Program-made: the position numbers and the translations under genes | Origin: Obrimoposthia wandeli | Lineage: Eukaryota | DNA: 64,000 bases | Direction of reading: 5' to 3' | Assembly (NCBI GenBank): GCA_977020255.1 | Contig: CDROCS010000253.1 | Location: 3,906,001 to 3,970,000, forward strand | Part shown: piece by piece, positions 4,742 to 63,998 of the stretch | Layout: every line of letters begins with the position of its first letter | How positions within the stretch are numbered: position 1 is the first letter of the stretch | Notes under the pieces: generated by a model | Told to the model about the DNA's origin: nothing | The model's database searches: none | Seen by the model: only the letters and a program-made list of their open reading frames with translations

Positions 4742-4769
4742 ATGTTATTTGTTGAAACTAAATAGCAAC

Positions 4770-5267: not shown

Positions 5268-5363
5268 TGAAAAATTCTACCTTTTACTGCAAAGTTGTTA
5301 TTATCCACTAACGACAGTAAACTAGCTACCCAAGTCTTAGCTACCTAAATAGCCGTTAAGTAA

Positions 5364-6149: not shown

Positions 6150-6350
6150 CGTTCATCGAGAAAACAGCTAAATAACGCTGCTATTTAATTCTCTCAAAAA
6201 GTCTCTAAGTAAGGTGTCCTCTATCTCTGCTAAAATTTATCAATGGATAAAAAGTGAAAGTTGATAAATCTTTGCTAACTCATTGAGTTACTTTTATCTT
6301 TTTATTGCTCAATTAATATCCACAAGCAATTTAAGGGCAATTATCTTTTA

Positions 6351-6364
6351 TTGATCTACATCAA
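6351..6364. promoter_or_regulatory. FNR box upstream of ccoN
   Basis: TTGAT-ctac-ATCAA, a perfect match to the consensus. Confidence 0.9.
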
Positions 6365-6445
6365 ATTTAAACGCGCATAGTTGTTGATTTATATCCTTGG
6401 CAAAGGGTAAAATTGCTGGGATTTAGACACATTTGCTTACACGGA

Positions 6446-6461
6446 TGTGACAAATATCACA
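6446..6461. promoter_or_regulatory. CRP box upstream of ccoN
   Basis: TGTGA-caaata-TCACA, a perfect match to the consensus. Confidence 0.75.
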
Positions 6462-6581
6462 GCTCATTGAGCAAACACACAGAGTTAGTATGAATTGTGT
6501 CCTATATCTAAGACTTTTCATGTTTAGATATTACAGCAACAAGTGCTTTCTGATTAATAATAACACTGCGGAATCCTTAAC

Positions 6582-8006
6582 ATGACCACAAGTAATACGT
6601 CAGCAGTAGACTACAACTTCGATGTTGTACGTCAGTTTACTGTAATGACTGTAATCTGGGGAATCGTAGGTACACTAGTAGGTGTACTTATCGCGGCACA
6701 ATTAATTTGGCCTGCGTTAAATTTTGATACACCTTGGTTAACCTACTCCCGTCTTCGTCCACTTCATACTAATGCTGTAATTTTTGCTTTTGGTACAAGT
6801 GCTCTATTTGCCACGTCTTATTACGTTGTGCAACGTACCTGTCAAACGCGACTATTTGGCGGTAAATTAGCAGCCTTCACCTTTTGGGGTTGGCAAGCTG
6901 TTATTGTTGCAGCGGCTATTTCTTTACCTTTAGGTTACACCTCTACAAAAGAGTATGCTGAGCTAGAATGGCCAATCGATATTCTTATTGCTGTCGTTTG
7001 GGTTTCATACGCCATTGTATTCTTTGGTACCTTAGTTAAACGTAAAACCTCGCATATTTACGTAGCTAACTGGTTCTTTGGTGGCTTTATCGTTACCGTT
7101 GCTGTATTGCATATCGGTAACTCAATGGTTATCCCTATTTCGCCAATGAAATCATACTCACTTTATTCTGGCGCAATTGATGCCATGATGCAGTGGTGGT
7201 ATGGACATAATGCCGTTGGTTTCTTATTAACCGCTGGTTTCTTAGGTATGATGTATTACTTCGTACCAAAACAAGCTGAACGTCCTGTATATTCTTACCG
7301 TTTATCTATTGTTCATTTCTGGGCATTGATTTCTTTATACATTTGGGCTGGTCCTCATCATTTACATTACACTGCACTTCCTGATTGGGCTCAGTCAGTT
7401 GGTATGGTAATGTCTATCGTATTATTCCTTCCTTCATGGGGTGGTATGATCAACGGTATCATGACGCTTTCTGGCGCATGGCATAAACTTCGTAGTGATC
7501 CTATTTTACGTTTCTTAATTGTTTCATTATCTTTCTACGGTATGTCTACCTTTGAAGGCCCGATGATGGCAATAAAATCAGTTAATGCCTTATCTCATTA
7601 TACTGACTGGACTGTTGGTCACGTACATTCTGGTGCTCTTGGTTGGGTTGCTATGGTTTCAATTGGTGCAATGTACCACTTAATCCCAATTTTATTTAAC
7701 CAAGGCCGTATGTACAGCATGCGTCTTATTAACATTCACTTCTGGTTGCACACTGCGGGTATCGTACTTTATATCGTAGCTATGTGGATTTCTGGTGTAA
7801 TGCAAGGGTTAATGTGGAGAGCTGTAAATAGCGACGGAACATTAACCTATAGCTTTGTTGAGAGTTTAACAGCTTCTTATCCATTCTATTTTATCCGCTT
7901 CATCGGTGGTGTATTAGTGGTAACTGGCTTCTTATTAATGGCTTACAACATGTTTAAAACAATTGGTGCTAAAGACAATAGTCTTAAGCCTCTTGAAGTA
8001 GCTTAA
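6582..8006 (+). CDS. ccoN: cbb3-type cytochrome c oxidase subunit I
   Basis: [27 protein letters not shown] and WTVGHVH heme/Cu ligand motifs. Confidence 0.98.
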
Positions 8007-8016
8007 GGAGAGCCAT

Positions 8017-8661
8017 ATGAAAAATTCACATGAAAAAGTTGAAAAGAACGTTGGCTTATTCTTCCTCTTTACTGTCTTTGCTATCAGCATCGGTGGTTTA
8101 GTAGAAATTACGCCATTGTTCTTTCAAAAAGAATTAGCGACACCCGTTGATAACTTAAAACCGTACACTGCCCTGCAAATGGAAGGTCGTGATATCTACA
8201 TCCGTGAAGGTTGTAGTAACTGTCATAGCCAAATGATTCGTCCATTTCGTGCAGAAACAGAGCGTTACGGTCATTACAGTGTTGCTGGAGAAAGTGTTTG
8301 GGAACATCCATTTTTATGGGGCTCTAAACGTACTGGTCCTGATTTAGCACGTGTTGGCGGTCGTTATAGTGATGATTGGCATATTGCCCATTTAACGGAT
8401 CCTCGTTCAGTGGTGCCTGAGTCCAACATGCCAGCTTATAACTGGTTGAACACTGACACGCTTGACGGTGAGTTAACGGGTAAGAAGCTAGAAACATTTA
8501 ACTTCTTAACACGTAACCGTAGCCATAAAGATGAAAACGGCAACGCAATTCCGCTTTATACACAAGCAGAAATTGATGGCGCTAAAGATGCGGTAAAAGG
8601 TAAAACTGAAATAAGCGCCTTGATTGCATACTTGCAATCACTTGGCCACGCATTGAAGTAA
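8017..8661 (+). CDS. ccoO: cbb3-type cytochrome c oxidase subunit II
   Basis: [13 protein letters not shown] and [12 protein letters not shown]. Confidence 0.97.
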
Positions 8662-8671
8662 GCTGAGCATC

Positions 8672-8878
8672 ATGGATTACGGAACACTTAGAGGGTTTTT
8701 TGCCCTCCTTATATTGGCGTTGTTTATTATCATCGTTGTATGGTCCTATTCAAAAAAGCGCAAATCATCTTTTGATGACATTGCAAGTTCGATTTTTGAA
8801 GAAGACAAAGTAAATACAGCAGATAAAACACGTCATCCCGATAAAGAAAGCAAACAGGAGACGAATAATAATGTCTAG
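8672..8878 (+). CDS. ccoQ: cbb3-type oxidase subunit CcoQ
   Basis: Small single-TM protein between ccoO and ccoP. Confidence 0.85.
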   Translation: MDYGTLRGFFALLILALFIIIVVWSYSKKRKSSFDDIASSIFEEDKVNTADKTRHPDKESKQETNNNV

Positions 8879-9842
8879 CTTCTGGAATATATGGGTTTGG
8901 GTTCTTACCCTTGGCTCGTTAGTAGGGTGTTTTTTACTACTACGTATGTGCTTAAAGAACTTTGCAGGCGTTAAAGAAGGCGAATCAATGGGTCATACAT
9001 TTGACGGCATTGAAGAGTTAAACAACCCTTTACCTAAATGGTGGAGTACGTTTTTCTTATTAACTATCGTTTGGGCATTTGGTTATATTGCACTTTATGG
9101 TTTAGGTAATTGGACTGGCCTTTTAGGCTGGAAAAGCTCTAACCAAGGCATTTTAAACCTTGCGGAATCAAAAGCTAAAACATTAGAGTATTTAGATAAA
9201 GACTCTGGTGTATTAGTTCAATATGACCGTGAAGTTGCCGCTGCCGATGCTAAGTTTGGTCCAATCTTTGAAGCTTACGCTGCGCGTAGCATTGAAGAGT
9301 TAGCGACTGATGGCGAAGCATTAAAAGTGGGTCAACGGTTGTTCATTCAAAACTGTTCACAATGTCATGGCTCTGATGCTCACGGTACTACCGGCTTCCC
9401 TAACCTAACTGATAAAGACTGGTTATATGGCGGTACACCTGCAGTAATTAAAGAGACTATTATGAATGGTCGTATTGCATCAGGCATGATGTCTTGGAAA
9501 GGCGCATTAGGCGGCGAGCAAGGCGTTAAAGAAGTTGCAGCTTATGTTATTAGCTTAAGTGGTCGCTCAGTTGACCCTGAATTAGCGAAAGCAGGTAAAG
9601 CTAAATTTCCTTTATGTGCAGCTTGTCATGGTCCTGATGGACAAGGTAGCTTAGCATTAGGTATGCCTATGGGCGCGCCAAACTTAACCGATAACACTTG
9701 GTTATATGGCGGTTCAAAACGTGCAATTGAAGAGTCTATCCGTAATGGTCGTGCTGGTGTTATGCCGCCATGGAAAGACATTCTTGGTGAAGAAAAAGTT
9801 CACCTAATTAGTGCTTATGTTTATAGTCTTTCTCAAGATTAA
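8871..9842 (+). CDS. ccoP: cbb3-type cytochrome c oxidase subunit III
   Basis: GHTFDGIEELNNPLPKWW and two CxxCH motifs (CSQCH, CAACH). Confidence 0.97.
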   Translation: MSSFWNIWVWVLTLGSLVGCFLLLRMCLKNFAGVKEGESMGHTFDGIEELNNPLPKWWSTFFLLTIVWAFGYIALYGLGNWTGLLGWKSSNQGILNLAESKAKTLEYLDKDSGVLVQYDREVAAADAKFGPIFEAYAARSIEELATDGEALKVGQRLFIQNCSQCHGSDAHGTTGFPNLTDKDWLYGGTPAVIKETIMNGRIASGMMSWKGALGGEQGVKEVAAYVISLSGRSVDPELAKAGKAKFPLCAACHGPDGQGSLALGMPMGAPNLTDNTWLYGGSKRAIEESIRNGRAGVMPPWKDILGEEKVHLISAYVYSLSQD

Positions 9843-9885
9843 TTAACCATAACACTGATATTGAACGGTTTAGTTCGCTCTTTGT

Positions 9886-9935
9886 CATTAGGGCAATGTG
9901 CTCTTGCATTGTCTAATAAGCTACATTCATGTAGC
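9886..9935 (+). repeat. Solo REP-like module (GCTACAT-NN-ATGTAGC)
   Basis: ATGTGCTCTTGCATTGTCTAATAAGCTACATTCATGTAGC aligns with the internal module of the MITEs at 2546 and 38511. Confidence 0.7.
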
Positions 9936-9971
9936 CCCATGGCAGATTGAGCTACCGTTCAACTTGAATAT

Positions 9972-10008
9972 AAAACCCTTGTTACACTTTGTAATCAAGG
10001 GTTTTTTT
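9972..10008 (+). terminator. Intrinsic terminator of ccoNOQP
   Basis: AAAACCCTTG...CAAGGGTTTT followed by a T-run. Confidence 0.8.
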
Positions 10009-10020
10009 ATGTCTTTTACT

Positions 10021-10287
10021 AATACCAAACGGATTAATTTATTGGTCAGCTTAGAGCTACATTAGCGAGCTTAAAACAAGCAAAATGAGTTAAACATAGT
10101 TATTCTATATTTCATTCATTTTGTGATGTTATTAGTTTGCTAATGTGCTCCCAAAGGGCGAGTTTAAAAGGCTTACATCCGGCGTTATTGATATTGACAA
10201 GGGAATAACCATTCTCTTCAATCAATGCCTTGACTCTAAGCCTTTTAATTCTCGCTAAGTGATTAATAAATTAGTCCGATTGGTATA
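10021..10287 (+). mobile_element. MITE type 2
   Basis: ~23-bp imperfect TIR (AATACCAAACGGATTAATTTATT ... AATAAATTAGTCCGATTGGTATA); shares an ~85-bp internal core with type 1. Confidence 0.75.
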
Positions 10288-10364
10288 AGCACAAAAGTAG
10301 CTGTCCGTTGAGAAAAAAGGTATAATCTTGCCCCATATTCTACTGTCAACGTAAGTACTTTTTT

Positions 10365-10859
10365 ATGAAAGATTCTTGGTACCGTGAGCCTTGGGCTTGG
10401 TTAGTTTTTATTCTTCCTTTTACCGCTGTTGTAGCGGGTATTGCTACTTATATTATTGCTAATACTAACCCTGATACGTTAGTGGTTGGCGATTATTATA
10501 AAAAAGGAAAGTCCATTAACCTAGAAGTAGGTAAAGTAAAAACAGCCCAGAAGTTGGGGATGCGTTTTGCCCTTCAATTAAAGGATAATGAGTTAATAAT
10601 AAAACCAACGGGTATTGAAAAAGTTTTCCCCCTACTTAATGTCAGTTTTTTTCACCCTACTCTTGAAGAAAAAGATTTTTATTTAGCCTTAACACCAGAT
10701 GGTAATGGTTATTTCAGACACCACTTTGATCAAGAGATTAGTGGTAAATGGAAACTTACTTTGACCTCTTTTAAAGACAACTGGAAAATACAAGATACTA
10801 TTAGCTTGCCACAAAGTGAATTTATCGACTTGATCCCTAACCCGATAAAAGCCCAATAA
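10365..10859 (+). CDS. ccoH: FixH/CcoH cbb3 assembly protein
   Basis: WYREPWAWLV and LVVGDYYKKGK motifs; lies before ccoI. Confidence 0.85.
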   Translation: MKDSWYREPWAWLVFILPFTAVVAGIATYIIANTNPDTLVVGDYYKKGKSINLEVGKVKTAQKLGMRFALQLKDNELIIKPTGIEKVFPLLNVSFFHPTLEEKDFYLALTPDGNGYFRHHFDQEISGKWKLTLTSFKDNWKIQDTISLPQSEFIDLIPNPIKAQ

Positions 10860-10891
10860 GTGATACCGCTTAAATAAATTAGTACCATTCT

Positions 10892-10930
10892 AATCACTAT
10901 GGTGACATCCATAAATTTACCATAGTGATT
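10892..10930. repeat. Perfect 12-bp inverted repeat between ccoH and ccoI
   Basis: AATCACTATGGT-N15-ACCATAGTGATT with no U-tract. Confidence 0.7.
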
Positions 10931-10952
10931 CTAAACCCCTAAGAAAGTAGCC

Positions 10953-13469
10953 ATGACCAGCAAATGTTTTCATTGTAATGAAGCCGTTCCCCGTGGAATT
11001 AACCTGTCGGTTGAAATCAGCCAAATTCAACAACCTATGTGCTGTATTGGTTGCCAAGCGATAGCGCAGACTATCGTTGATAATGGTCTAACTCAATATT
11101 ATTCGGTAAGAACAGAGCCTGCTCATAAAGGTCAATCCCTCATACCCGAACAATTACAAAAAAATAAATTACTTGATGAAACGGTATTACAGAGCGAATT
11201 CATTTATCAAGACAATGATTGCAAAGAAGCCATACTGACTATTGATGGCATCAGTTGCGCAGCTTGTGCTTGGCTTATCGAAATGCAATTGGAGAAGCTG
11301 AAAGGTTTAATCAAAATAAACGTTAATGCGACTAGCCAAAGAGCAACGGTCAGATGGCAAGATGATGCGGTAAAACTCAGTGATATATTGCACGCGATTG
11401 AGCATATTGGTTATCAAGCACTGCCTTTTAAAGCCAACGAAGCAGAATTAAGAAATAAAAAGCAAAGCAAAGCCTTTATCAAACGTCTAGGTATCAGTGG
11501 CATCTTAATGATGCAAATCATGATGATAGCCTTTGGCCTTTACTTTGGTGCATTCTCTGAAATGGCTGAGCACAATAAAGTATACCTACGCTGGGTTAGT
11601 TTCATCTTAACAATCCCTATTATTTTTTATGGTGCCTTGCCCTTTTATACTGGCGCGATAAAAGCGATAAAAGCAAAGCGCTTATCCATGGATGTTCCCG
11701 TCTCTATTGCCATCCTTTTAGCTTTCAGTGCAAGTGCTTGGGCAACAATTAGCCAACAAGGTGAGGTTTATTTTGAGTCTGTTTCCATGTTCACCTTTTT
11801 ACTGCTTATTGGTAAGTTCTTAGAATTTAGAGCCCGATCACATGCAGCACAAGTCTCTGCCAACTTATTAAAATTAATGCCGATGACGGCAACTAAAGTC
11901 ATTGTGACTAGCGATAATATTGGCACAGAAGCACAAAGCGGTAATTTACAAGGTACTGACTCACAAACTCACGCAACCCAAGCTAAAGCAGCTCAAACTA
12001 AAGAAGTATTGGTTGCCGCTAAACAGCTCATCCTTGGTGATGTTGTTATTATTAAACCAGGTGAAGTGGTACCTGCTGATGGCGTCATTACTGCTGGGCT
12101 AAGCCAACTCAATGAAGCCATGCTCTCCGGCGAACAATTACCGATTAATAAAACAGTCAATGACAATGTCTTTGCGGGTACTATTAATGGCGACGGTAAT
12201 ATTACCGTGCAGGTAAAACAGGCAACAAACCAATCATTTTTAAGCCAACTTATTCGCTTAAGTGAACAAGCTCAAGCGCACAAACCTAAAATAGCAAAAT
12301 TATCAGATAAGATTGCCCAGTATTTTGTTGCCCTAATTTTATTAACCTCCATAGCTACGGCTATTTATTGGCACCAACATATGCCAGAAGAAGCTTTTTG
12401 GATCACCCTTTCTGTCCTTGTAGCGACCTGCCCTTGTGCACTTTCATTAGCAACACCCACCGCATTAACCTGTGCAACTACACATTTAAATAGAGCGGGC
12501 ATAATGATCAAAGGTGGTCATGTGATGGAAACCATGCCGAAAATCAACTGTTTTGCTTTTGACAAAACAGGCACCCTAACCACGGGCGAATTTACCATTA
12601 ACAGGGTTGAGTTAATCGATAACTCAAGCTACAACCAAGAGCAAGTACTGGCCATTGCCGCAGCGCTAGAAGCACATTCAGAACATCCTATTGCCAAACC
12701 CTTTGCCGAGCACAGAGATTACCGCTTAACTTCACAGCAAGTTAAAGTGCACTCTGGACAAGGTGTCACCGGTACCATTAATGCTATTGATTATGCTATT
12801 GGTAAGCACACTTGGTTAGAAGAAAGCACCTCCTTTGACAATATTCAAACACAGTCTGTTTACGTTAATGAAAAGGTTAATGTAAACGGTGCCAGCTGTA
12901 TTTTAATGGCGAATAACAAAATTATTGCCGCATTTTATCTTATTGATAAGATTCGTAATGAGGCTGTTGAAACGTTATCTCGCCTCAATAAACAGAATAA
13001 AACATTATTGTTATCCGGTGATAGTCAAATCGCATGTGACGTAATTACGCAAACACTACCCGTTAATACGGTATTGGGCGGGTTAAGTGCTGAAGATAAA
13101 ATGCAGCAAATTAAACAAGCGCAAGCACAAGGTTATAAAGTGGCGATGACAGGTGATGGCGTTAATGACTCGCCAGTATTTGGTGCCGCTCATATTTCCA
13201 TTGCCATGGGCTGTGGTGCAGATATCACTAAAAGTGGCGCAGATGTTATTTTACTCAATAATAAACTGAGCAGTATCAATATATTGATAAAAGTTTCTCA
13301 CAAAACTCGCCGAATAATTTTACAAAATTACTTATGGGCTTTTGGTTATAATGCTATTGTATTACCGTTAGCTGTGACAGGTTATATAACGCCTTATATG
13401 GCTGTTATTGGCATGTCAGCTAGCTCCATTTTAGTTATTACTAATTCATTACGTTTACTTAAAAAGTAA
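10953..13469 (+). CDS. ccoI: CcoI/FixI P1B-type copper ATPase
   Basis: N-terminal CFHC and CCIGC, CAAC metal-binding domain, CPC, DKTGT and GDGVND. Confidence 0.93.
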   Translation: MTSKCFHCNEAVPRGINLSVEISQIQQPMCCIGCQAIAQTIVDNGLTQYYSVRTEPAHKGQSLIPEQLQKNKLLDETVLQSEFIYQDNDCKEAILTIDGISCAACAWLIEMQLEKLKGLIKINVNATSQRATVRWQDDAVKLSDILHAIEHIGYQALPFKANEAELRNKKQSKAFIKRLGISGILMMQIMMIAFGLYFGAFSEMAEHNKVYLRWVSFILTIPIIFYGALPFYTGAIKAIKAKRLSMDVPVSIAILLAFSASAWATISQQGEVYFESVSMFTFLLLIGKFLEFRARSHAAQVSANLLKLMPMTATKVIVTSDNIGTEAQSGNLQGTDSQTHATQAKAAQTKEVLVAAKQLILGDVVIIKPGEVVPADGVITAGLSQLNEAMLSGEQLPINKTVNDNVFAGTINGDGNITVQVKQATNQSFLSQLIRLSEQAQAHKPKIAKLSDKIAQYFVALILLTSIATAIYWHQHMPEEAFWITLSVLVATCPCALSLATPTALTCATTHLNRAGIMIKGGHVMETMPKINCFAFDKTGTLTTGEFTINRVELIDNSSYNQEQVLAIAAALEAHSEHPIAKPFAEHRDYRLTSQQVKVHSGQGVTGTINAIDYAIGKHTWLEESTSFDNIQTQSVYVNEKVNVNGASCILMANNKIIAAFYLIDKIRNEAVETLSRLNKQNKTLLLSGDSQIACDVITQTLPVNTVLGGLSAEDKMQQIKQAQAQGYKVAMTGDGVNDSPVFGAAHISIAMGCGADITKSGADVILLNNKLSSINILIKVSHKTRRIILQNYLWAFGYNAIVLPLAVTGYITPYMAVIGMSASSILVITNSLRLLKK

Positions 13470-24992: not shown

Positions 24993-25178
24993 TATACCCG
25001 CCCCACTTGAAAGTGCTCGTTTCAGGAAACCTGAGGGAATCATAATCAAGGCATATTTTTTTATTAAGGGTCACTCGGGAGAATGTGCTCCTGAATAACC
25101 ATTCTCTTCAATCAATACCTTGCCTAAAGGCGTTTATAATTCCAGCTGAATCCTGCATCTTCGAGTGGAACGGGTATA
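24993..25178 (+). mobile_element. ERIC-like MITE type 1, internally deleted
   Basis: Same TIRs as 2546-2860; lacks ~130 bp between GTGCTCCTG and AATAAC. Confidence 0.85.
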
Positions 25179-52827: not shown

Positions 52828-54021
52828 TTACCCTTTAAACTGCCATTTATCAAATTGATCCGCTGGCATAGGCCTAGCGATATAATATCCTTGAGCAATA
52901 TCACAACTTTCTGCTAATAATAAATCCCATGTTTCTTTATCTTCAACCCCTTCTGCTACCACTTCCATATTAAGCTTATGCGCTAACATAATGCAGGTTT
53001 CAACAATGGCCTTACTCTCCTTTTCTTGCTTCATATTAGCAACGAAAGACTGATCAATTTTCAATTCGGTAAAAGGGATTTTATGTAACTGCGATAACGA
53101 TGAATACCCGGTACCAAAATCATCAATGGATAGTTGAAAGCCCTTTAACCTGAGACGAGTTAAAATATCTAATGACGTCACTTCACTATCCATTAAGGCA
53201 CTTTCTGTTAACTCTAAAACAATCATAGAGGGATCAAGTTCATACTCCTTAACCAGCATTCTTAGCTGTTCAGGGAGTTTTAAGCTAGTTATATTTTGTG
53301 CTGAGATATTAATAGATAATCGAATCGATTTATGCAATTCTTGCCAATGAACACTTTGTCTTATCGCTAAATGGATGACTTCTTCAGAAAGCTGTTCTAT
53401 TAAGCCAGTTTGCTCTGCAAGGGCAATAAATTTATCAGGAAAAATAAGGCCAAACTCAGGGTGTAACCAACGGACTAATACTTCAGCGCCATGAAGACTG
53501 CCCGTTCTCATATTAATTTGAGGTTGGTAATATAAAAAGAGTTGTTTGTTATCAATAGCATCACGTAAGTCTTTTTCTGTTGGAATAAACTCAAACACCC
53601 CTAGAGTAGATTTATCATTATTTGTGCTAACAAGTTCTCTTTGCGTCTGTTTATCCGCTAATGATGTCAATAAGCGCGTTAATACGTTGGTATTAATTGG
53701 TTTAGTAAAAGTACTGGTAACATTTAACCCGCAACTTAACGCTAAAGTTTCAGCTGAATGTAATACACCGCTGTCGTAACCACTGACTAAAATCAAGCTT
53801 GCCGGAGATTTATGCTTAGCTAAATGGCGAATTACTTCAATACCATCCATATCAGGCATCATCAAATCTAATAGTATAATGTCATGTGTATGCAAGGTTA
53901 ACGTTAAAAATGCGCGCGCATGCTGAAATGTTTGAACATTACTAAAAATAGGCTCAACGATAGTTTTAAGTAAGTTACACGTTAACGTATCATCATCAAC
54001 AATGAAAACTCTATTGCTCAT
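52828..54021 (-). CDS. REC-EAL c-di-GMP phosphodiesterase
   Basis: IVDDD/LDLMMP receiver; EVLVRW, ELTE, DDFGTGYSSL, KIDQSF, AEGVE and QGY. Confidence 0.92.
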   Translation of the reverse strand: MSNRVFIVDDDTLTCNLLKTIVEPIFSNVQTFQHARAFLTLTLHTHDIILLDLMMPDMDGIEVIRHLAKHKSPASLILVSGYDSGVLHSAETLALSCGLNVTSTFTKPINTNVLTRLLTSLADKQTQRELVSTNNDKSTLGVFEFIPTEKDLRDAIDNKQLFLYYQPQINMRTGSLHGAEVLVRWLHPEFGLIFPDKFIALAEQTGLIEQLSEEVIHLAIRQSVHWQELHKSIRLSINISAQNITSLKLPEQLRMLVKEYELDPSMIVLELTESALMDSEVTSLDILTRLRLKGFQLSIDDFGTGYSSLSQLHKIPFTELKIDQSFVANMKQEKESKAIVETCIMLAHKLNMEVVAEGVEDKETWDLLLAESCDIAQGYYIARPMPADQFDKWQFKG

Positions 54022-57000
54022 ACGTATCACCCTCGTCGGTATTACCTTTTAATCCCTTTTCCTCTTGCTCTTTTTTTTTCATAATATACTTATATAAAGG
54101 CTTATCCATTTCCATTATATGCTCAACTAGCCATACGCTCATTTCTGTACTTAACCACAATAGAATTTCTTTTTCTGAACAAGCAACAAGCTTTTGACTG
54201 AGTTGTTTAGCAATCATATCGTGTACCTCACTATGATTTTTAGCATAAGGGTAATTAATTTTTTTCATCCACCATTCTTCCCTAACAAAGTGCTCCTGAG
54301 TATAGTGAACTAGCTCGGTGATAATTTCTTGTAGGGGTTGATGAAAATCGTCGACTGTTAATAAGTCTTGACAGCGATTAAGTAAAACACACAGTAATTT
54401 ATGATCATCATCGAGTACGCCACCATCATCAATGCTCATTTCATTTGTCCATATTATTCTTTTTATTTGTGAAATTTCAATGATTTTTTCAGTGCTGTAA
54501 TTACTGTCCTGCTCACTGTTCTGATGACTAACCTGCAATATATTAGTCTCTTGGTTGTCTAAACAATGTCTAACTCTACTAAGTAAAAAATTGTTTTCAT
54601 AAGGCTTTGCAATGATAGCTTCGTCTAACGTTATTTTGTTATCAGCTTGATTGCCTTGAAAACCACTAGCTAATATTATTTTTAATTTAGGATAAAGTTT
54701 TTGCGCTTTTTCGACTAAAAGATAGCCATTCATTTGAGGCATAATAATGTCTGAAAACATCAAGTCAATTGAATTTTTTTCTAAAACAGCTAACGCATCT
54801 ATACCATTAGTAGCCGTTAAAACACGATAACCTTTTGCCATTAAAATTGTTTGAGCTAAAGTACGTAGCAGAGGTTCATCATCTACAACGAGAATGCTTT
54901 CATTTCCTTGTACACTAGGCTGCTCTTCTTTATTTTCGTCTCTATCTTCTTCTTGGTATTCTTCTGTCGGCTTTGGGAAATAAAGTGAAAATCTCGTTCC
55001 TGCTTCCGGCTCTGAATAGACATTAATAGCGCCCATCGAAGATTTCATAAAGCCATAAACTTGTGCTAACCCTAATCCTGATCCTTGATCTCCTTTAGTG
55101 GAAAAAAACGGTTCGAATATTTTATCTTGAATAGCTTTACTCATGCCGACACCATTATCTTCAATAGATAATTGTACATATTTACCTTGATGAATATTAA
55201 AGCTACTTGCTTGTTCTTTTGATAACTCCACCTCACAAGTTGATAAGGTTAACATGCCACCTTGAGGCATCGCATGCATAGCATTAATTGCCATATTTAA
55301 TAAAGCGTCTTCGAAAGAGTTTCGATCAATATTAATCTTATGAATATCATCATCAAGATTTAGCGTTAACTCTACCGACAGTAATGTTTTACGAAGCACA
55401 TCTTTATTATTTTTTATTAGACGATTAATATCTGATTCTTGACTAGAGTCGGGTGTTTGACGGGAAAAAGAAAGTAATTTACGGGTGAGTTGTGCACCTC
55501 TATTACCCGCTTGATTAATTTGATCGACAAAATTAAGCAATGCAGGCTGATCTGTTAACTGGGCTTTTAAAATATCGCTATAACCAATAATAACGCCCAA
55601 CATATTGTTATAATCATGGGCAATACCACCCGTTAATTGCCCAAGCGCTTCCATTTTTTGTGTTCTGTTTAAGAGTTTTTCATGCTGTTTTGTTTTTGAT
55701 AAGTCATGACAAACCCCGACAAAACGTTTTCGTTCATCATGATTTTTAGGAAGCTCAGCGATAGTTAAATGTAAGGGAAATGTTTTCTGATCCTTATTTT
55801 CCCCAATAAGCTCTCGACCTTTTCCTATTATTTGGGTTTCACCCGTTAATAAATAATTTTTTATATAATTATCATGTTGCCTAGCTAGCTTTTCTGGCAT
55901 GAGTAAACTCACATTTTTGCCAATTAATTCTTCTGTCGTATAACCAAACATTTGCTCTGTGGCTCTATTACAACTTTGTATCAAACCTAAATCATTAATC
56001 GTAATAACGGCATCGAATATGGCATCAAGCGTTTGAGATAACTCTTTTTGTTGCTTTGAAATTTTGGCAAGATTAGCAATATGCTCGGTCACATCATGGC
56101 CAATTCCTATGACGCCAGCAATATCACCACTTTCTTTTCTTAAGGGAAACTTTGAGGTTTCAATAATTTTATTATTTTCAAGTGGTCGACAGCCCGGAAT
56201 ATCAACACGATTACCATTCAATACTTCTTGGTCTTGAGCTCTAATTTTATTTATTTGTTCCTCGGTAAAACCAAGCTGTTGGTCAGTTTTTCCAATTAAA
56301 AATTGAGATGATTTTTTTAAAGACTGAGCATAAGCATTATTAGCTAAAATATATTGGTGTTCTGTATTCTTGGCGTAAATTAAATCAGGTGTTGAACTAA
56401 TCACGTTATTTATTAATGTGTTCGATTGCTCTAACTGAATCTCTGCTTGTTTTTTTTCTGTTATATCAATAATAATACCTTGATAAAAAGTAACGTTTCC
56501 ATCCTCATCTCGTTCAACTGTGGTTCTGTCATCAACCCAGTACACTTTTCCTGAAGGAGACACAATACGATATTCGTGAGTAAAGTTTTTCACTCCATTT
56601 TCAGTGAAATTATTAACCTCTTTCATCACACGCACTATATCTTGAGGGTGCAGCATATCTGTATATTTAATTTTTCCAGAGAGTAAATCACTTGCTTGAA
56701 CGCCCAATAAATCAATGTTGCTTGATACATGTTCTACCGAGCAGTTTTCATCCGCTCGCCAGCGAAACGCGATAACGGGGCTATTTTCAATAACAAGCTT
56801 GGATGTCTCAAGGTTATCTTGATAATGCTTTAATTGAGTGATATCGCGTGCATTCACCATAACACCATAAATATTGCCGTCGTCTTGATAATAGGGCGAT
56901 AGTTCAATCTCCATAAACAAGTGATGTTCCGGCGTCATTTTCATCCACCTTTCTAGCTTAATAACATCACCAGCTAAACAACGTTCACAGTGACTTTTAA

Positions 57001-58051
57001 TCTCTGCATCAAAATATTTTTTGCCAAAAATATCAATGAGGTTTTTACCAACAACCTGCTCAATGGTTAAATTAAGCTTTTCTACATAGGCTTGGTTCAC
57101 CGCTAAATAAACAAAATTATCATCAAGTAACGCTTGCATGCCTGATGATAAAGTCACCATAGATTTATATTGATGTAAGTTTTTATTGCTTTCATCTTGA
57201 AAAGCCATCAATTTTTTAGTGACAAGCATGGCCATAAAACCACAGATTACAGAAAATAATATAAGAATAGAGGTAGAGACAAAAATAGAATTATTAACCG
57301 AGTTGACGGTAAACATAAAATGTTGAATTAGCCCTGTTATAAATACACTCAAGACCGTAAAGGGGGTAATAAACCGTATCAACGCAGTAGAGGGCGATAC
57401 GTCCGTAAATATTTTCATTAAATAATTTTTTTTATCATTTATTATCAGTATGCCAGAGACGCATAAAAAGCCTAAACTGGTCGATAAAGCCATAGGTATG
57501 ATGTCTTGTGTATTATAAAACAAAGGCGATTTATAAAGGTAGGTAACGATAAATAACAATGACGTTAATGATAAAAGCGTAGTGAAAATAGGTTTGATTA
57601 GGTTAATAAAATGACTGATTTTACGCTTTTTACTTTGATTCAATAGTATGAGCAACACACAACTAGTAAGAAAAAAACAAAACCCCGTTACAGGAGACAT
57701 TCTAGCAAGAGGGATACCATCAAGATATCCAAAACTAGGAACGATATAACTCTCCAAATTAAGTTCAACACCCGTTAAATACTGAACGACTTCTAACAAT
57801 CCAAATAGAGCAACAATAAATATGGTTAGCGAAATATACCTTTTATAGCGATAAAATTCTCTTGTATATTTAACCCAAACTAGCGAGACAAAAATAGTCA
57901 CTAAAAATAAAATAGCGGTTGATGGAGCCATTGGAATAAAGCCGTCATCAATACTTAAAAAAAATTCGAATAAAGGTAAATATAAAATACCACCTAATAA
58001 AGCTAAGCTAAATACACTTACAAACAGAATTATATTTAATTTTTGTTTCAC
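54011..58051 (-). CDS. Hybrid histidine kinase: TM domain, 4 PAS, HisKA, HATPase, REC, hemerythrin
   Basis: IAHDYNN H-box, TKGDQGSGLGL, VVDDE/SDIIMP receiver, and C-terminal DDDH/HFVRE/HSEVH/HIMEMD. Confidence 0.92.
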   Translation of the reverse strand: MKQKLNIILFVSVFSLALLGGILYLPLFEFFLSIDDGFIPMAPSTAILFLVTIFVSLVWVKYTREFYRYKRYISLTIFIVALFGLLEVVQYLTGVELNLESYIVPSFGYLDGIPLARMSPVTGFCFFLTSCVLLILLNQSKKRKISHFINLIKPIFTTLLSLTSLLFIVTYLYKSPLFYNTQDIIPMALSTSLGFLCVSGILIINDKKNYLMKIFTDVSPSTALIRFITPFTVLSVFITGLIQHFMFTVNSVNNSIFVSTSILILFSVICGFMAMLVTKKLMAFQDESNKNLHQYKSMVTLSSGMQALLDDNFVYLAVNQAYVEKLNLTIEQVVGKNLIDIFGKKYFDAEIKSHCERCLAGDVIKLERWMKMTPEHHLFMEIELSPYYQDDGNIYGVMVNARDITQLKHYQDNLETSKLVIENSPVIAFRWRADENCSVEHVSSNIDLLGVQASDLLSGKIKYTDMLHPQDIVRVMKEVNNFTENGVKNFTHEYRIVSPSGKVYWVDDRTTVERDEDGNVTFYQGIIIDITEKKQAEIQLEQSNTLINNVISSTPDLIYAKNTEHQYILANNAYAQSLKKSSQFLIGKTDQQLGFTEEQINKIRAQDQEVLNGNRVDIPGCRPLENNKIIETSKFPLRKESGDIAGVIGIGHDVTEHIANLAKISKQQKELSQTLDAIFDAVITINDLGLIQSCNRATEQMFGYTTEELIGKNVSLLMPEKLARQHDNYIKNYLLTGETQIIGKGRELIGENKDQKTFPLHLTIAELPKNHDERKRFVGVCHDLSKTKQHEKLLNRTQKMEALGQLTGGIAHDYNNMLGVIIGYSDILKAQLTDQPALLNFVDQINQAGNRGAQLTRKLLSFSRQTPDSSQESDINRLIKNNKDVLRKTLLSVELTLNLDDDIHKINIDRNSFEDALLNMAINAMHAMPQGGMLTLSTCEVELSKEQASSFNIHQGKYVQLSIEDNGVGMSKAIQDKIFEPFFSTKGDQGSGLGLAQVYGFMKSSMGAINVYSEPEAGTRFSLYFPKPTEEYQEEDRDENKEEQPSVQGNESILVVDDEPLLRTLAQTILMAKGYRVLTATNGIDALAVLEKNSIDLMFSDIIMPQMNGYLLVEKAQKLYPKLKIILASGFQGNQADNKITLDEAIIAKPYENNFLLSRVRHCLDNQETNILQVSHQNSEQDSNYSTEKIIEISQIKRIIWTNEMSIDDGGVLDDDHKLLCVLLNRCQDLLTVDDFHQPLQEIITELVHYTQEHFVREEWWMKKINYPYAKNHSEVHDMIAKQLSQKLVACSEKEILLWLSTEMSVWLVEHIMEMDKPLYKYIMKKKEQEEKGLKGNTDEGDTYEQ

Positions 58052-58144: not shown

Positions 58145-58410
58145 TATACCCGTTCCACTTGAAGATGCAGGATTCAGCTGGAATTAGAAACGCCTTTAGG
58201 CAAGGCATTGATTGAAGAGAATAGTTATTCTATTGTCGAAATCAATAACGCAGCATAAAGCGTTTATAAACCAGCCCTTTGGGGAATACTGAGCAAAGCA
58301 TACCCGTCGTTGCATTTGTTTTAAGGGAGCAACCCTTAACAAAAAAATGTGCCTTGATTATGATTCGCTCAGGTTTCCTGAAACGAGCATCTTCAAGTGG
58401 AGCGGGTATA
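58145..58410 (-). mobile_element. ERIC-like MITE type 1 lacking the REP-like module
   Basis: Same TIRs; a ~105-bp block nearly identical to the copy at 2546; 49 bp shorter. Confidence 0.87.
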
Positions 58411-58425
58411 TACCATTAAATTTGA

Positions 58426-58998
58426 TTAATTTAATGCCAGTTGTTTTAATAAAGCAGCAGCATCTATAGGTTTATTTAAACAAGTTTCTGCACCAATACT
58501 TTTAAGTTTTTCAATCTCACTTTGACTCACATTTCCAGAAATAGTAATCACGCGAATATGATTTTGTAGCGGGTTTTCCTTGACCGATTGGCATACTTGA
58601 AAACCATCAAGACCCGGCATTTTAAGATCTAACAACAGTATATTCGGGGTAAAATCACGCAGTTTATTCGCCGCGTCAAAACCATCTAAACTGATTTCAA
58701 CTTCTACCTTTTTAATTTCTATTTTTAGTAACGTCTTTAGAAATTCAGCAAAATGAATATCATCATCAACAATCAAAACTTTAGGATTATCACTGGTATT
58801 AGTATTAAGCTGAATGTTTTTTTGTGTGGCAAATTCTTTTATATCATCAAGTTTAAAACGGCGATGGCCACCAGCAGTGACTCTTGCTTTTAAGCTACCT
58901 TTTTCTGCCCATAAACGAACGGCTGCAGTAGAAACCATAAGCAATTCAGCAACCTCTTTAGGCGTTAAGTAGCTTTTTACTGGTTTTTTCGATGACAT
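58426..58998 (-). CDS. Response regulator with N-terminal excisionase-like HTH
   Basis: YLTPKEVAELL...TAGGHRRF followed by REC (IVDDD, LDLKMP, NKP). Confidence 0.88.
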   Translation of the reverse strand: MSSKKPVKSYLTPKEVAELLMVSTAAVRLWAEKGSLKARVTAGGHRRFKLDDIKEFATQKNIQLNTNTSDNPKVLIVDDDIHFAEFLKTLLKIEIKKVEVEISLDGFDAANKLRDFTPNILLLDLKMPGLDGFQVCQSVKENPLQNHIRVITISGNVSQSEIEKLKSIGAETCLNKPIDAAALLKQLALN

Positions 58999-59111: not shown

Positions 59112-59217
59112 ACGAGTTTAATGTTTATTGCGTTTTTTGCGAATTCCATTGTTTTTATGGTTCTATTACGTAGACTTTACTTTTATAAATAACTTCAACA
59201 GTTCATGGAAGGTCCTA

Positions 59218-61206
59218 ATGCGGCTTGTAGATATCTCCTTTAATAAGAAAATTTTTATTTTATTACTTTTTCCTCTGTTGGGGTTTTTAGGAATAGGAAT
59301 AAACGCCATTGTATCTTCCCTTTCAACAAACAATGAAATGGAAAAGCTGAGCAAGTACACCAAACTTTCTTCGGTATATAGTGAGCTCGTTCATGAGCTA
59401 CAAAAAGAGAGAGGAATGACCGCTGGTTTTCTTGGCTCCAAAGGAGTGAGGTTTGCCAACACATTACCAAGCCAAAGACAGAAAACCTCTAATATAGCGG
59501 AGAAACGAGTAAAGTACTGGCAAGAAAATCAATTTGATAATAAGCAGATTCAACAATTAAATGACAATATTACTCAGCGTATAAATATGCTGGCTCAAAT
59601 TAGAAACAATGTTAACAAATTATCAATTCCTTTATCTGATGCGGTAGCCTTCTATACAAAAACCAATGAATTATTATTAAGTGTTTCAACTATCATTGCT
59701 AAAATATCTACGAATGCTGAGATAACAAAAGAAACGGTTGCTTATTATAATTTTCTTCAAGGTAAAGAAAGAGCCGGTATTGAAAGAGCGGTATTAACCG
59801 GTACTTTTGCTTCAGGTAAATTTAATCAGGGAGAGTACCAAAAGTTCATCCAATTTCTTTCAGAGCAAAACACTTATTTTTATAGCTTTAATGCCTTCGC
59901 AAGTGATGAAAATAAAAGTTACTTTATGCAGAAACAAAGTGCCCCCTCAATCAAAGAAGTGATCAAGCTAAGAAATATTGCGATAAATAATGCTACTTCA
60001 GAAAACCTTAATGTCGACGCTACTTATTGGTTTGAACAATCAACGAAAAGAATTGGCGTATTAAAAAACATTGAAGATAAATTAACTAATTCGTTATTGA
60101 TACTAGCTAAAGAAACCCAACAAAAAGCATTTAACACGTTAATTTATCTCGTAACGACTGCACTTGTCATTCTCTTGTTAGTTGCTGTTTTTAGTTTTTA
60201 TATTATGAAAGAGCTACATAACCAAGTCGCAGATCTTACTTGTGTTATGTCAAAAGTGAGTGATGAAAATGATTTAACTGCCAGAGCAACATTTACCGGT
60301 AAGAGCGAGTTAGGGCAAATTTCTACTGCGTTGAATCTAACGCTTGAGAAGTTTTCAGGCGCAATGAGTGAGATTTCTACTTCCAGTACAATGCTTGCCG
60401 CCGCAGCAGAAGAAACATCACAAACATGTGAACATAACTCTCGTTCGTTGGTTGAACAACAAGATGAAATTACGCTTATTGCTACCGCGATAGAAGAGTT
60501 ATCTGCGACAGTTAAAGAAGTTGCAGGAAATACTCAATTAGCCGCTGATTCAGCAAAAGAAGCTGATGAGCAAGCACAAAATGGAGCTGGTGTTGTCCAA
60601 GCATCGTACCATTCAATTGAAAGCCTTGCTGAAGAAATAAATAACTTGGCTCAAAGAATCACAAGCCTTCACGAAAGTAGTAACAATATAACAAGTGTGG
60701 TTGATGTGATTAAATCAGTCGCAGAACAAACTAACTTACTTGCCTTAAATGCTGCAATTGAAGCAGCAAGAGCCGGTGAACAAGGCCGTGGTTTTGCTGT
60801 TGTTGCAGATGAAGTTAGAACGTTAGCTCAAAGAACTCAACAATCAACAAGTGAGATTGAAAGTTTTATTTCGGCCCTACAATCAGATGCTAACTCAGCC
60901 TATAGTGTGATAGAAAAGAGTCAAAAAATGGCAGTGAGTGCGGTAGAAAATTCAAAAAATGTTGAGCAAACGTTAGGCGCTATCACCCACTCCGTCAGTA
61001 ATATTTTTGCGATGACCGAGCAGGTTGCTGTTGCGGTAGAAGAACAAGCAATGGTTACTCAAGATGTAGCTAAAAATGTTGTCACTATTGAGCATAAGTC
61101 AATGGAATCAACAACAGGTTCAACTCAAATAACCACTACAGCCAAAGAACAAGCAATGCTCGCGGTAACATTACAAGATATATCGACGATATTCAAAATA
61201 TCTTAA
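59218..61206 (+). CDS. Methyl-accepting chemotaxis protein with NIT (nitrate/nitrite) domain
   Basis: [10 protein letters not shown] and [13 protein letters not shown] motifs, HAMP and [27 protein letters not shown]. Start moved to the Met at 59218. Confidence 0.88.
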
Positions 61207-61454: not shown

Positions 61455-62243
61455 CTAATTAGCCAAAACAGAAAACTCTGAAATATCTGCATTGTTTTTA
61501 ATTTTACTAAACACCTCGAAATACCTTGGTGATTGTGAGACGGCTTTTGAAGCTTGTTGTAATTTATCTAATAATTTTTTGTTGGTTTGCTTATTTATAG
61601 CAATAAAAACATCTCTTTGTGCTTCTGGTACTATAGTTATATTTACTATTTCGTTACTTATTTTGCCAATATTATTATAGTGGTTCCTCATAACTTCTGG
61701 GTCTGTATAGATAAGATCAACTTTGCCTTTTTTAAATAAAATCATTGCATTATCGATAGCTGATACGACATATAGATTTTTATCTTCGGTAAAACCTTTA
61801 TCAATTAGTGATTTATAGCTGTAACTATCTCGTGTCACTGCAACTAATTTATTCTTTGCTTGAGTAATATTTTTAACAAAATTATCCGGTTTAGATTTTA
61901 GCGAAATGAATGCTCTCCTTGATTCATTAACTTTAATGAGCCAAACAAAATTACTTTCTCTTTTCTTTGTTCGAGTTAAGCTTAAAATAAGAGTATTTGG
62001 CTGAGTTAACACGCTGTTAAGCGCTCTCGCCCAAGGATAAAAATCGACTTTTGTTTTTATTCCTATTTTTAGCATTAACATTTTAAAAATTTCAGCTGAA
62101 GGACCTTTAACTTGCCCATCCTCAACATACTGAAACATTTTGTGAGATGAGGCGACAGCTTTTAGATCAGATGATGCTTGTGCGTTTGCACTAAACCAAA
62201 TGACCAAATAACAAATAAAAATATATTTCACTTTTTCTCTCAT
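61455..62243 (-). CDS. Stand-alone periplasmic substrate-binding protein (family 3-like)
   Basis: Signal peptide, YPWARA and LTRTKKRE..F.W motifs; no permease adjacent. Confidence 0.75.
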   Translation of the reverse strand: MREKVKYIFICYLVIWFSANAQASSDLKAVASSHKMFQYVEDGQVKGPSAEIFKMLMLKIGIKTKVDFYPWARALNSVLTQPNTLILSLTRTKKRESNFVWLIKVNESRRAFISLKSKPDNFVKNITQAKNKLVAVTRDSYSYKSLIDKGFTEDKNLYVVSAIDNAMILFKKGKVDLIYTDPEVMRNHYNNIGKISNEIVNITIVPEAQRDVFIAINKQTNKKLLDKLQQASKAVSQSPRYFEVFSKIKNNADISEFSVLAN

Positions 62244-62459
62244 CTTAAGGAACTGGCAGATGTATGAACCATAACTTAATACAATGTATATATCGGATCA
62301 ACTCTGCGAAATAAATACCTGTCTTCATAGGATTATCAAAAGTTAGCTGCGCTATCAAAGTGCAGGGTTTCAGTGGGAATTAAGACCACTTACCACTGAT
62401 ACAACATAATTAAATCAGAGGTGAACTATTACACGTAATAGCTCCTAATTATTTAATTT

Positions 62460-63998
62460 TTACTTGTCTATGGTAATAAAATTATCATCTGAGAAAGCGA
62501 CAATAGCATCTTTACCATTTTCTTTAGCTTGATAAAGCGCTTCATCTGCGCCATTAAAAACATCGATAGTATTGGATATTTTATCTGTGAAGTTTGAAAT
62601 GCCATATGAACAGGTTATCTTTAGTGTTTTATTATTTTTGCGTAATTTAAACGTTAAACTATCAACAACTTTACGTATTTTCTTGGCTATTTGAATGGCT
62701 TTGTTTAAATCTGTTTCAGGTAAAATAACAACGAATTCATCACCACCATAGCGAGCGATATAGTCTGAAGAACGAATATTGTTTTTTAAGGTTTCCACTA
62801 AGCTTTTTAACACTTGGTCACCAATACTGTGACCAAAGTTGTCGTTAATACTTTTAAAGCTATCTACATCTATGAGCACAAGTGCCAAAGGCCGTTGAGA
62901 GGTTAACCAATTATTTCTTTCTTTATTAATGGCCTGCACATAACCTTTGCGATTACCAACCGCCGTTAATTCGTCAATTAAGTTAGTTTCTTTGGCTGTA
63001 TTTAGCTGATTCTCAAGTTTTTCAATAAAGCTGCTCGCATTCACAACTTTATTGTTTAAATTCTTAATGGTTTTAGCATTAGCTTGCTGAGCCTGGTTTT
63101 GTGATTTTGCATAGTCATTCATAATTTCAGACATTAATAATACACTCTCATTAATGTGTTTTTGCATGCCTGCAACTGTATCTATACATTTTGCTTTAAC
63201 TTCCATATTTTTAAACTCAGCCACCATATTAAGTTTTACCTTGTCAGCATTACTTTTGGTCGAGGCCATTAGTTTATCAATTATGGTGGTTTGCTTAAAA
63301 ACCCCCACAAGATTAGCATGAATATCATTGAGCATTTCTTCCGTACTGCATCGTTCTTGTTGAATTAACAATGCTAAATGTTTTGTCGTGCGCTCTAATA
63401 AATCAATTGACTTGAAGAAAATACCTTTACCACTTGGGATTTGAGTTGCTTCATGTAAGACGCTACTAATAAGTTTGTCATTAGGATAGGTTTGGATTAA
63501 CTGTTTTGAAATGGCCACCACTTCTTTAATTAACCTTTTACTTGCTAAAAAAACATCACTGGCAACAACATCAGTTTCTTCAGTCACCATTTCTTTATTA
63601 GAAACGATTACATTTGATGCTGCTCTTAGTTCGCTTAATTCATTAGCAAAGTATTCCAGTGCCCTACCGGCAGTAACCATAATGGTATGAACGGGTTGTT
63701 CTAGCTTAATTTCAGATAATATAGTGGTGATTTTTTCTACTTGGCTGGTTGAAAGCTTATTATCGGCACTTTGATTCATTAAAGATTTAAAAGTATTTAA
63801 ATCTTTTTCAAGGTCTTCACGCTCCAATTCATCAATGCTTTGCTGCATCTTTGCATATTGCTCAACAAGTGAAGTAAAAGTAAATATAGCATCATTAGAT
63901 GCTAATGTTTCTTTAATACTCTCCACTTGATTTGCTAAAGGCCCAGAGTTTGGCAAACTACCAACGAAGTGTGCTAATGCTCGCTTAAGCTCAATATT
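62460..63998 (-). CDS. Coiled-coil GGDEF diguanylate cyclase (5'-partial)
   Basis: DELTAVGNR, DVDSFKSIND.FGH and RSSDYIARYGGDEF; frame stays open to the window end. Confidence 0.9.
   Translation of the reverse strand, partial: NIELKRALAHFVGSLPNSGPLANQVESIKETLASNDAIFTFTSLVEQYAKMQQSIDELEREDLEKDLNTFKSLMNQSADNKLSTSQVEKITTILSEIKLEQPVHTIMVTAGRALEYFANELSELRAASNVIVSNKEMVTEETDVVASDVFLASKRLIKEVVAISKQLIQTYPNDKLISSVLHEATQIPSGKGIFFKSIDLLERTTKHLALLIQQERCSTEEMLNDIHANLVGVFKQTTIIDKLMASTKSNADKVKLNMVAEFKNMEVKAKCIDTVAGMQKHINESVLLMSEIMNDYAKSQNQAQQANAKTIKNLNNKVVNASSFIEKLENQLNTAKETNLIDELTAVGNRKGYVQAINKERNNWLTSQRPLALVLIDVDSFKSINDNFGHSIGDQVLKSLVETLKNNIRSSDYIARYGGDEFVVILPETDLNKAIQIAKKIRKVVDSLTFKLRKNNKTLKITCSYGISNFTDKISNTIDVFNGADEALYQAKENGKDAIVAFSDDNFITIDK

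Follow-up and report, generated by a model that had tools for sequence, protein, structure and literature searches.

A conserved cassette of marine Proteobacteria pairs a hybrid histidine kinase ending in receiver and hemerythrin domains with a predicted REC-EAL c-di-GMP phosphodiesterase

The DNA studied here is a 64,000-nt stretch of contig CDROCS010000253.1 (the window), a piece of the genome of a cold-marine, Colwellia-like bacterium that carries on its minus strand the genes for a hybrid sensor histidine kinase, for a REC-EAL response regulator (a receiver domain, REC, joined to an EAL domain) and for a regulator that joins a helix-turn-helix domain to a receiver (HTH-REC). We found that the kinase, which ends in a receiver followed by a bacteriohemerythrin domain (Hr), forms a conserved two-gene cassette with REC-EAL, a predicted phosphodiesterase of cyclic diguanylate (c-di-GMP). 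This module of histidine kinase, receiver and hemerythrin (HK-REC-Hr) occurs in many marine Alpha- and Gammaproteobacteria. We propose, with a probability of about 0.55, that the cassette is an O2/redox-tuned relay controlling c-di-GMP hydrolysis, in which Hr would act at the step from the kinase receiver to the phosphodiesterase. Such a conserved and taxonomically broad cassette would use a phosphorelay to couple sensing by non-heme iron with c-di-GMP.

54011..58051, minus strand: hybrid sensor histidine kinase gene, 1346 aa (open reading frame list, translation, Pfam, orthologs)
52828..54030, minus strand: REC-EAL response regulator, predicted PvrR/RocR-like c-di-GMP phosphodiesterase (Pfam EAL, 1.1e-74, and REC)

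Conservation of the cassette

To survey the distribution of the module, a single genome of each species was scanned with a degenerate pattern, and the 80 hemerythrin loci that this yielded were classed with local hidden Markov models. In 25 of these 80 loci, HisKA, HATPase, REC and Hr stood in this order at the C-terminus of the protein. These 25 proteins come from Colwellia (7), an Alteromonadaceae metagenome-assembled genome (MAG), Terasakiella (4), Thalassospiraceae, Rhodospirillales, Halieaceae, Ectothiorhodospiraceae and several gammaproteobacterial MAGs. Their N-terminal sensors differ, and include dCache, GAF, PilJ, PAS and other membrane domains. The full architecture of the window kinase is present in at least seven Colwellia species representatives.

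In 23 of the 25 HK-REC-Hr loci, the kinase gene is flanked on its own strand by a gene for a full-length REC-EAL homolog, compared with 3 of the 55 other hemerythrin loci. This gene is mostly located immediately downstream of the kinase, and upstream of it in Terasakiella and in locus L063. A scan of metagenomes gave a similar picture: of the 23 loci that could be assessed, 20 have REC-EAL directly adjoining and another has it elsewhere in the cluster. According to Pfam, the three loci outside the module that do carry REC-EAL (L036, L085 and L015) are rearranged forms of the cassette, and a fourth variant was found in a metagenome contig:

L036, 30-3286: PAS-HisKA-HATPase-REC, then Hr-REC-EAL (Pfam)
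L085, 4489-9629: dCache-PAS-GAF-HisKA-HATPase-REC, then REC-Hr-REC-EAL (Pfam)
L015 (Psychromonas), 128-2746: free 141-aa Hr, then REC-EAL (Pfam)
L111 (metagenome), 2316-5952: HK-REC, then Hr-REC, cut by the contig end

Whichever polypeptide bears it, Hr sits between the kinase receiver and the phosphodiesterase receiver. These fission and fusion variants sharpen the question of whether Hr gates the step between two receivers. Two of the 25 loci depart from the pairing: in L026 a single-domain receiver overlaps the kinase stop, and in L044 nothing accompanies the kinase. In L026 (8453-9463, a Rhodospirillaceae MAG), the HK-REC-Hr gene and the single-domain receiver are followed by an HbpS-like heme-degrading or heme-binding protein in the place of REC-EAL.

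In the window, the REC-EAL gene overlaps the end of the kinase gene by 20 nt. Its translation contains the receiver Asp and the EAL catalytic motifs EVL, ELTES, DDFGTG, KID, EGVE and QG. The top NCBIfam model was PvrR (NF052596), at 283 bits and under its cutoff of 580, so that the protein does not qualify as a PvrR/RocR ortholog. The preliminary description of this DNA had proposed c-di-GMP breakdown as the likely output on account of the overlapping REC-EAL gene. This proposal is strengthened by the conserved adjacency and by the fusion proteins; c-di-GMP breakdown as the output is well supported by the adjacency across distant lineages and by these fusions.

The hemerythrin domain

54077..54460, minus strand: bacteriohemerythrin domain, aa 1198-1325, with seven diiron ligands (Pfam, TIGR02481, DcrH-Hr alignment, AlphaFold2)

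The C-terminal domain passes both TIGR02481 (70.7 bits, cutoff 51.75) and PF01814 (35.6 bits, cutoff 25.3). Its top match in the PDB is DcrH-Hr (E 1.2e-8), and bacteriohemerythrin structures also align. Residues H1217, H1254, E1258, H1273, H1277, H1311 and D1316 align on the seven iron ligands of DcrH-Hr, and all seven, together with the lead-in W-T-x-E-M-S-I-D, are invariant in 15 orthologs. The domain had been placed beforehand at about 54070-54455 (aa 1200-1327) with seven ligands and a W..MSI lead-in, and the DcrH-Hr alignment and the orthologs bear out both. In the AlphaFold2 model it comprises four long helices (fragment residues 173-295) with a predicted local distance difference test score (pLDDT) of 80-93, as in a four-helix bundle. 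Hence, Hr has a complete diiron ligand set by alignment, and iron and O2 binding are predicted. Two distant members, P0023 and P0025, are without the first His ligand.

A word-indexed search with the Hr domain alone retrieved close orthologs only. A search for stand-alone REC-Hr proteins returned chiefly short-contig fragments and one possible case, P0291 (283 aa).

The preliminary description had also pointed out that hybrid kinases often end in a histidine phosphotransfer (HPt) domain, which is a four-helix bundle like hemerythrin. No PF01627 match was obtained with Hr, and hhalign probabilities against two HPt-containing proteins were 0.14% and 0.35%. Moreover, across the 15 orthologs and the distant members, Hr has no conserved His apart from the buried iron ligands. 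With these probabilities and no extra conserved His, Hr as a relative of HPt is ruled out at the sequence level.

Kinase core, receiver and linker

55682..56059, minus strand: PAS4, putative FixL-type heme PAS, aa 665-790 (match to Bradyrhizobium japonicum FixL, BjFixL; aligned His and Arg)
56072..57169, minus strand: PAS1-PAS3, aa 295-660 (Pfam, PDB sequence search)
54962..55660, minus strand: kinase core, HisKA with H-box His812 and HATPase_c (Pfam, NCBIfam)
54557..54904, minus strand: receiver domain, aa 1050-1165, phospho-acceptor Asp1101 and Lys1149 (Pfam, invariant residues, fold)
54461..54556, minus strand: REC-to-Hr linker, aa 1166-1197, variable and probably disordered (poor ortholog conservation, AlphaFold2 pLDDT below 50)

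Pfam recognizes four PAS domains in the kinase (aa 307-405, 447-527, 552-656 and 670-785), followed by HisKA (803-865), HATPase_c (909-1028), Response_reg (1053-1160) and Hemerythrin (1212-1322), and the first 290 residues have no match. All domain calls of the preliminary description hold in the Pfam, PDB and NCBIfam searches. In NCBIfam the core resembles PRK13557, CckA and FixL, and the PRK13557 model spans both kinase and receiver. The orthologs keep without exception the H-box residue H812, the ATP-binding boxes (N923, DxGxG and GxGxG) and the receiver residues D1101 and K1149, which identifies the protein as a hybrid histidine kinase. PAS2 has a weak resemblance to the PAS-A domain of FixL in the PDB sequence search.

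We modelled the REC-Hr fragment with AlphaFold2 on an 18-sequence alignment. The model consists of a receiver fold and the four long helices, joined by a linker (aa ~1168-1194) with pLDDT below 50. When this model was submitted to Foldseek, only receivers were matched, the CckA receiver being among the top ones.

The kinase has its nearest counterparts, all of the same architecture, in C. psychrerythraea, C. demingiae, C. hornerae and MAGs of Colwellia. We collected 21 orthologs, mostly from Colwellia, with 54-82% identity. The kinase gene starts with GTG, preceded by AGGAA 8 nt 5' of the start, and the same start is used in the orthologs. The ortholog of C. demingiae ACAM 459 (L009:4401-8453) is interrupted within PAS2 by one in-frame stop, at codon 444. 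Because of this stop, the deposited protein (P0004) is 899 aa long and has no membrane domain; the stop could be a genuine truncation or an assembly error.

The PAS4 domain

The top PDB match of PAS4 is the heme domain of BjFixL (E 2.5e-23, 85 bits, 125 residues), followed by the heme PAS of DosP (E 1.6e-12), whereas non-heme PAS structures score far lower. His726 (codon 55874-55876) aligns with the proximal His200 of BjFixL and Arg746 (codon 55814-55816) with its distal Arg220. In addition, most hydrophobic pocket positions agree with BjFixL. This is the FixL pattern that had been reported at about 55700-56040 (aa 670-785). From these alignments, PAS4 carries a FixL-like heme pocket, and heme binding itself is predicted.

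The heme His is kept in 13 of 15 orthologs; the exceptions are P0008, with Gly at this position, and P0018 of C. hornerae, with an 18-residue deletion in the pocket. The position of Arg746 is occupied by Cys in P0002. Some distant HK-REC-Hr proteins contain a PAS domain with the motif M-P-E-R-Y-R-x-x-H, in which the His is kept and the distal Arg is not, and they were therefore not counted as FixL-type heme domains. Among the surveyed loci, a full FixL-like pocket occurs together with Hr in the Colwellia clade only. The preliminary description treated the heme PAS and Hr as a pair. As an obligate pair they do not stand, since the pocket was lost in P0008 and in C. hornerae while Hr and REC-EAL are constant. 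Judged from the sequences, the heme PAS is an accessory addition of the Colwellia lineage, and Hr with REC-EAL is the conserved core.

The membrane sensor domain

57197..58051, minus strand: N-terminal membrane domain, aa 1-285, about 8 helices, triplicated 2-helix unit (profile search, hhalign)
57914..57937, minus strand: motif 1, I-P-M-A-P-S-T-A (aa 39-46), predicted outer end of helix 2 (hydropathy, positive-inside loops)
57683..57706, minus strand: motif 2, A-R-M-S-P-V-T-G (aa 116-123), predicted outer end of helix 4 (hydropathy, positive-inside loops)
57476..57499, minus strand: motif 3, I-P-M-A-L-S-T-S (aa 185-192), predicted outer end of helix 6 (hydropathy, positive-inside loops)

The kinase begins with the multi-helix membrane domain and three P/R-M-A/S-x-x-T repeats already recognized in the preliminary description. 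The internal repeats are supported by hhalign at probabilities of 96% and 95.6%, and helices 2, 4 and 6 would each carry a P-M-A/S-x-x-T motif at the outer end. No Pfam (E<=10) or NCBIfam model matches this domain. When 1.84 billion cluster representatives were searched with a profile of the domain, 3,623 family members were retrieved at E<=1e-3, and 904 at the stricter limit of E<=1e-10. Across 110 distant family representatives, conservation of the three motifs reaches at least 80%. The domain is always N-terminal in family members, one of which is from Verrucomicrobiota; PAS histidine kinases make up 42 of 55 sampled members and GGDEF proteins 2 of 55. AlphaFold2 gave a poor model, with a mean pLDDT of 57. 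Altogether, this is a very large sensor family with three conserved P-M-A-x-x-T motifs and without a Pfam or NCBIfam model.

The layout is reminiscent of MHYT domains, which also consist of three two-helix repeats, have a Met-containing motif in every repeat close to the outer face of the membrane, and are N-terminal to signalling domains. However, the kinase motif is P-M-A/S-x-x-T and that of MHYT is M-H-Y-T. Homology to MHYT was ruled out, as there is no PF03707 match and the hhalign probability against the MHYT region of P0075 is 0.95%. MASE11, a 7-transmembrane domain found with PAS domains and kinases (Galperin & Chou 2021 preprint, S. oneidensis SO1387), is a possible candidate name for the family.

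Flanking genes and repeat element

58426..58998, minus strand: HTH_17/MerR-like DNA-binding domain with a C-terminal receiver (HTH-REC), upstream of the kinase (Pfam)
59128..61206, plus strand: NIT-HAMP-MCP chemoreceptor of the nitrate/nitrite-sensing type, divergent neighbour of uncertain membership in the system (Pfam NIT 2e-60, MCPsignal)

The Colwellia version of the system is a three-gene signalling cluster comprising HTH-REC, kinase and REC-EAL. Neighbours encoding HTH-REC, the NIT chemoreceptor and a cytochrome b561 were found in Colwellia loci only, where HTH-REC is upstream of the kinase; the chemoreceptor gene adjoins the cluster in 5 of 9 Colwellia loci. The upstream regulator (58426-58998) has its HTH_17/MerR/BldC-like domain first and its receiver last, the reverse of the usual order. 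A 498-aa GGDEF protein, located on the minus strand within 61455-63956 of the window, comes after an SBP_bac_3 solute-binding protein and has no domain match in its N-terminal half. It is likely a diguanylate cyclase, 3.4 kb away from the REC-EAL system.

The HTH-REC gene is separated from the start of the kinase gene by a 374-nt spacer, which contains a repeat resembling a miniature inverted-repeat transposable element (MITE) at window positions 58145-58410, with 21-nt inverted repeats at its termini (ACCCGCTCCACTTGAAGATGC). Other copies in the window are located at 2549-2857 and 24996-25175, with a half copy at 38514. Contig depth over the repeat is 4,000-12,000, compared with about 50 on its flanks, and contigs end at the repeat boundaries. 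The site is empty in one ice-metagenome contig, and the spacer in relatives is about 95-107 nt. The insertion may have separated or re-wired kinase transcription from the upstream regulator.

Proposed mechanism and alternatives

By analogy with FixL, PAS4 would bind heme and set autophosphorylation of His812 according to O2, the deoxy form being the active one. The phosphoryl group would then pass from His812 to Asp1101 and to the partners REC-EAL and HTH-REC. Behind the receiver, the diiron Hr may change state with O2 or redox, the diferrous form differing from the diferric or oxy form, as VcBhr-DGC and Bhr-HD-GYP suggest. By gating the step from the kinase receiver to the phosphodiesterase, Hr would make c-di-GMP hydrolysis, and with it the choice between biofilm and motility, track oxygen or redox. 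The membrane domain and PAS1-PAS3 may add further inputs. The direction of each response is taken from these analogies. The position of Hr in the fission and fusion variants points to action between the receiver and the phosphodiesterase rather than to a second input to autophosphorylation.

Several observations weigh against this proposal. The adjacency of the genes demonstrates functional linkage, and it is silent on the point where Hr acts. The counts overstate independence, as they include metagenome loci some of which are near-duplicates. The Colwellia linker between REC and Hr spans about 32 aa and is disordered in the AlphaFold2 model, whereas the gap in alphaproteobacterial versions is just 5-12 aa. 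As to the heme input, the heme His is absent from P0008 and P0018, and this input is therefore dispensable. In BjFixL, Arg206 of the FG loop contacts heme propionate 7. Its equivalent here is Asn732, with Lys731 adjacent, and Arg is found at this position in 0 of 15 orthologs; therefore, the FG-loop coupling, if heme binds, cannot match that of BjFixL. The equivalent of FixL His214 is Gln739. Finally, neither Pfam nor the locus comparisons revealed an HPt gene in the cluster or in positions 45-64 kb of the window. Given this result and the dissimilarity of Hr to HPt, transfer would be either direct from His812 or through an unlinked HPt. On the direct route, the attached receiver would compete or regulate, as in VirA-type kinases.

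An alternative close to the preliminary description is that the heme PAS4 and Hr are parallel gas inputs to one switch, giving two O2 thresholds or O2-versus-nitric oxide (NO) discrimination, with Hr acting on autophosphorylation. Both pockets look complete, several Colwellia have kept the NIT chemoreceptor as a neighbour, and heme and diiron cofactor classes differ in ligand chemistry. Nevertheless, Hr goes with REC-EAL and not with the kinase core in L036, L085 and L015, two orthologs lost the heme pocket and kept Hr, and the distal Arg of FixL is missing in most HK-REC-Hr proteins outside Colwellia. We consider this arrangement unlikely. Thus, of the two inputs first proposed, both pockets are present, but the placement of Hr in the variants points to the step from receiver to phosphodiesterase and not to autophosphorylation. 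Two gas sensors in one kinase are a plausible and secondary feature, the more interesting one being the Hr-capped relay with its REC-EAL partner.

Another reading departs from gas sensing as such: Hr could report iron availability, peroxide or redox stress, or scavenge O2 locally, and PAS4 could bind a non-heme ligand or nothing. DcrH-Hr autoxidises quickly, two heme-propionate contacts of BjFixL are replaced in PAS4, and P0023 and P0025 have no first His ligand. Furthermore, Bhr-HD-GYP behaves as a sensor of redox state and does not form a stable O2 adduct (PMC8846402). On the other hand, neither the seven ligands nor the region of the hydrophobic pocket vary within the Colwellia clade, and the PAS4 match to FixL is far above those to non-heme PAS structures, which makes this reading unlikely.

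The idea that Hr is itself an HPt surrogate, either bridging the two receivers physically or carrying the phosphoryl group in a relay gated by iron or O2, is very improbable: Hr does sit exactly where relays of the Roc and ArcB type, with unorthodox kinases like RocS1 (H1-D1-H2), have their HPt, lies between two receivers in four different gene arrangements and belongs to a cluster with no HPt gene, but the hhalign probabilities are those given above, the sole conserved His residues are the buried iron ligands, and it is simpler to assume an HPt encoded elsewhere or direct transfer from His to Asp, since hybrid kinases without HPt are common (VirA, and CckA with its separate ChpT).

Returning to the proposed relay, a stronger form of it can be put forward only tentatively, namely that Hr replaced an HPt module between the receivers and gates the receiver-to-receiver step by O2, redox or iron, the heme PAS of Colwellia being a second, serial checkpoint. 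If Hr does stand in the place of HPt, gases would be sensed within the relay itself and not at the input of the kinase. The Colwellia version would also allow heme and diiron sensing to be compared within one protein.

Comparison with known systems

In the literature consulted we found no characterised protein with the architecture of this kinase, as the preliminary description had supposed, and nothing on hemerythrin signalling in Colwellia. However, the architecture is not unique, being shared by the Colwellia species described above, and its HK-REC-Hr module is widespread. Characterised hemerythrin sensors are few: reviews name DcrH, VcBhr-DGC and Bhr-HD-GYP, with no histidine kinase among them. 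A 2016 survey lists signalling fusions of hemerythrin that include a 'phosphorelay' class, without detail, and a 2025 paper on methanotrophs describes a predicted N-terminal Hr with PAS domains.

As in FixL of B. japonicum and S. meliloti, the window kinase has a heme-type PAS directly upstream of HisKA-HATPase, in which the proximal His and distal Arg are kept. Like the hybrid FixL of Rhizobium, it has a C-terminal receiver and no HPt. The FixL equivalog NF041777 aligns over 400 residues, at 207 bits and far below its cutoff of 850. The two proteins differ in the replacement of Arg206 by Asn and of His214 by Gln, and in the additional 8-helix membrane domain, three PAS domains and Hr of the window kinase. 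Moreover, the partners of FixL are FixJ or FxkR, whereas those of this kinase are REC-EAL and HTH-REC.

With regard to Hr, DcrH of Desulfovibrio vulgaris is likewise a membrane protein of signalling with a hemerythrin appended at its C-terminus, in the cytoplasm. Unlike the window kinase, DcrH has a chemoreceptor output and neither a receiver nor an EAL partner. In known proteins, Hr regulates MCP (chemoreceptor), GGDEF and HD-GYP outputs (PMC9388753, PMC8846402). In particular, in VcBhr-DGC of Vibrio cholerae and Bhr-HD-GYP of Ferrovum, Hr controls c-di-GMP turnover through the redox or O2 state of the diiron site (PMC8846402, PMC9388753). The N-terminal position of Hr in the Hr-REC-EAL protein of L036 follows the layout of these two proteins. 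In both of them Hr is fused to the enzyme, whereas in the window it is carried by the kinase, with the phosphorelay in between.

A parallel in gene layout is the Roc1 system of Pseudomonas aeruginosa, which consists of the kinase RocS1 (H1-D1-H2, with HPt at the end), the DNA-binding regulator RocA1 and the REC-EAL protein RocR (PMC12051241). The three-gene layout of Roc1 and PvrSR, with a hybrid-type kinase, a DNA-binding response regulator and REC-EAL, is found in the window. The sensors differ, being Sbp3 and PAS in RocS1 and a membrane domain, the heme PAS and Hr in the window kinase. The DNA-binding partner is NarL-like in Roc1, and here it is HTH_17/MerR-like with a C-terminal receiver. 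RocS1 ends in an HPt domain (H2), whereas the window kinase ends in Hr.

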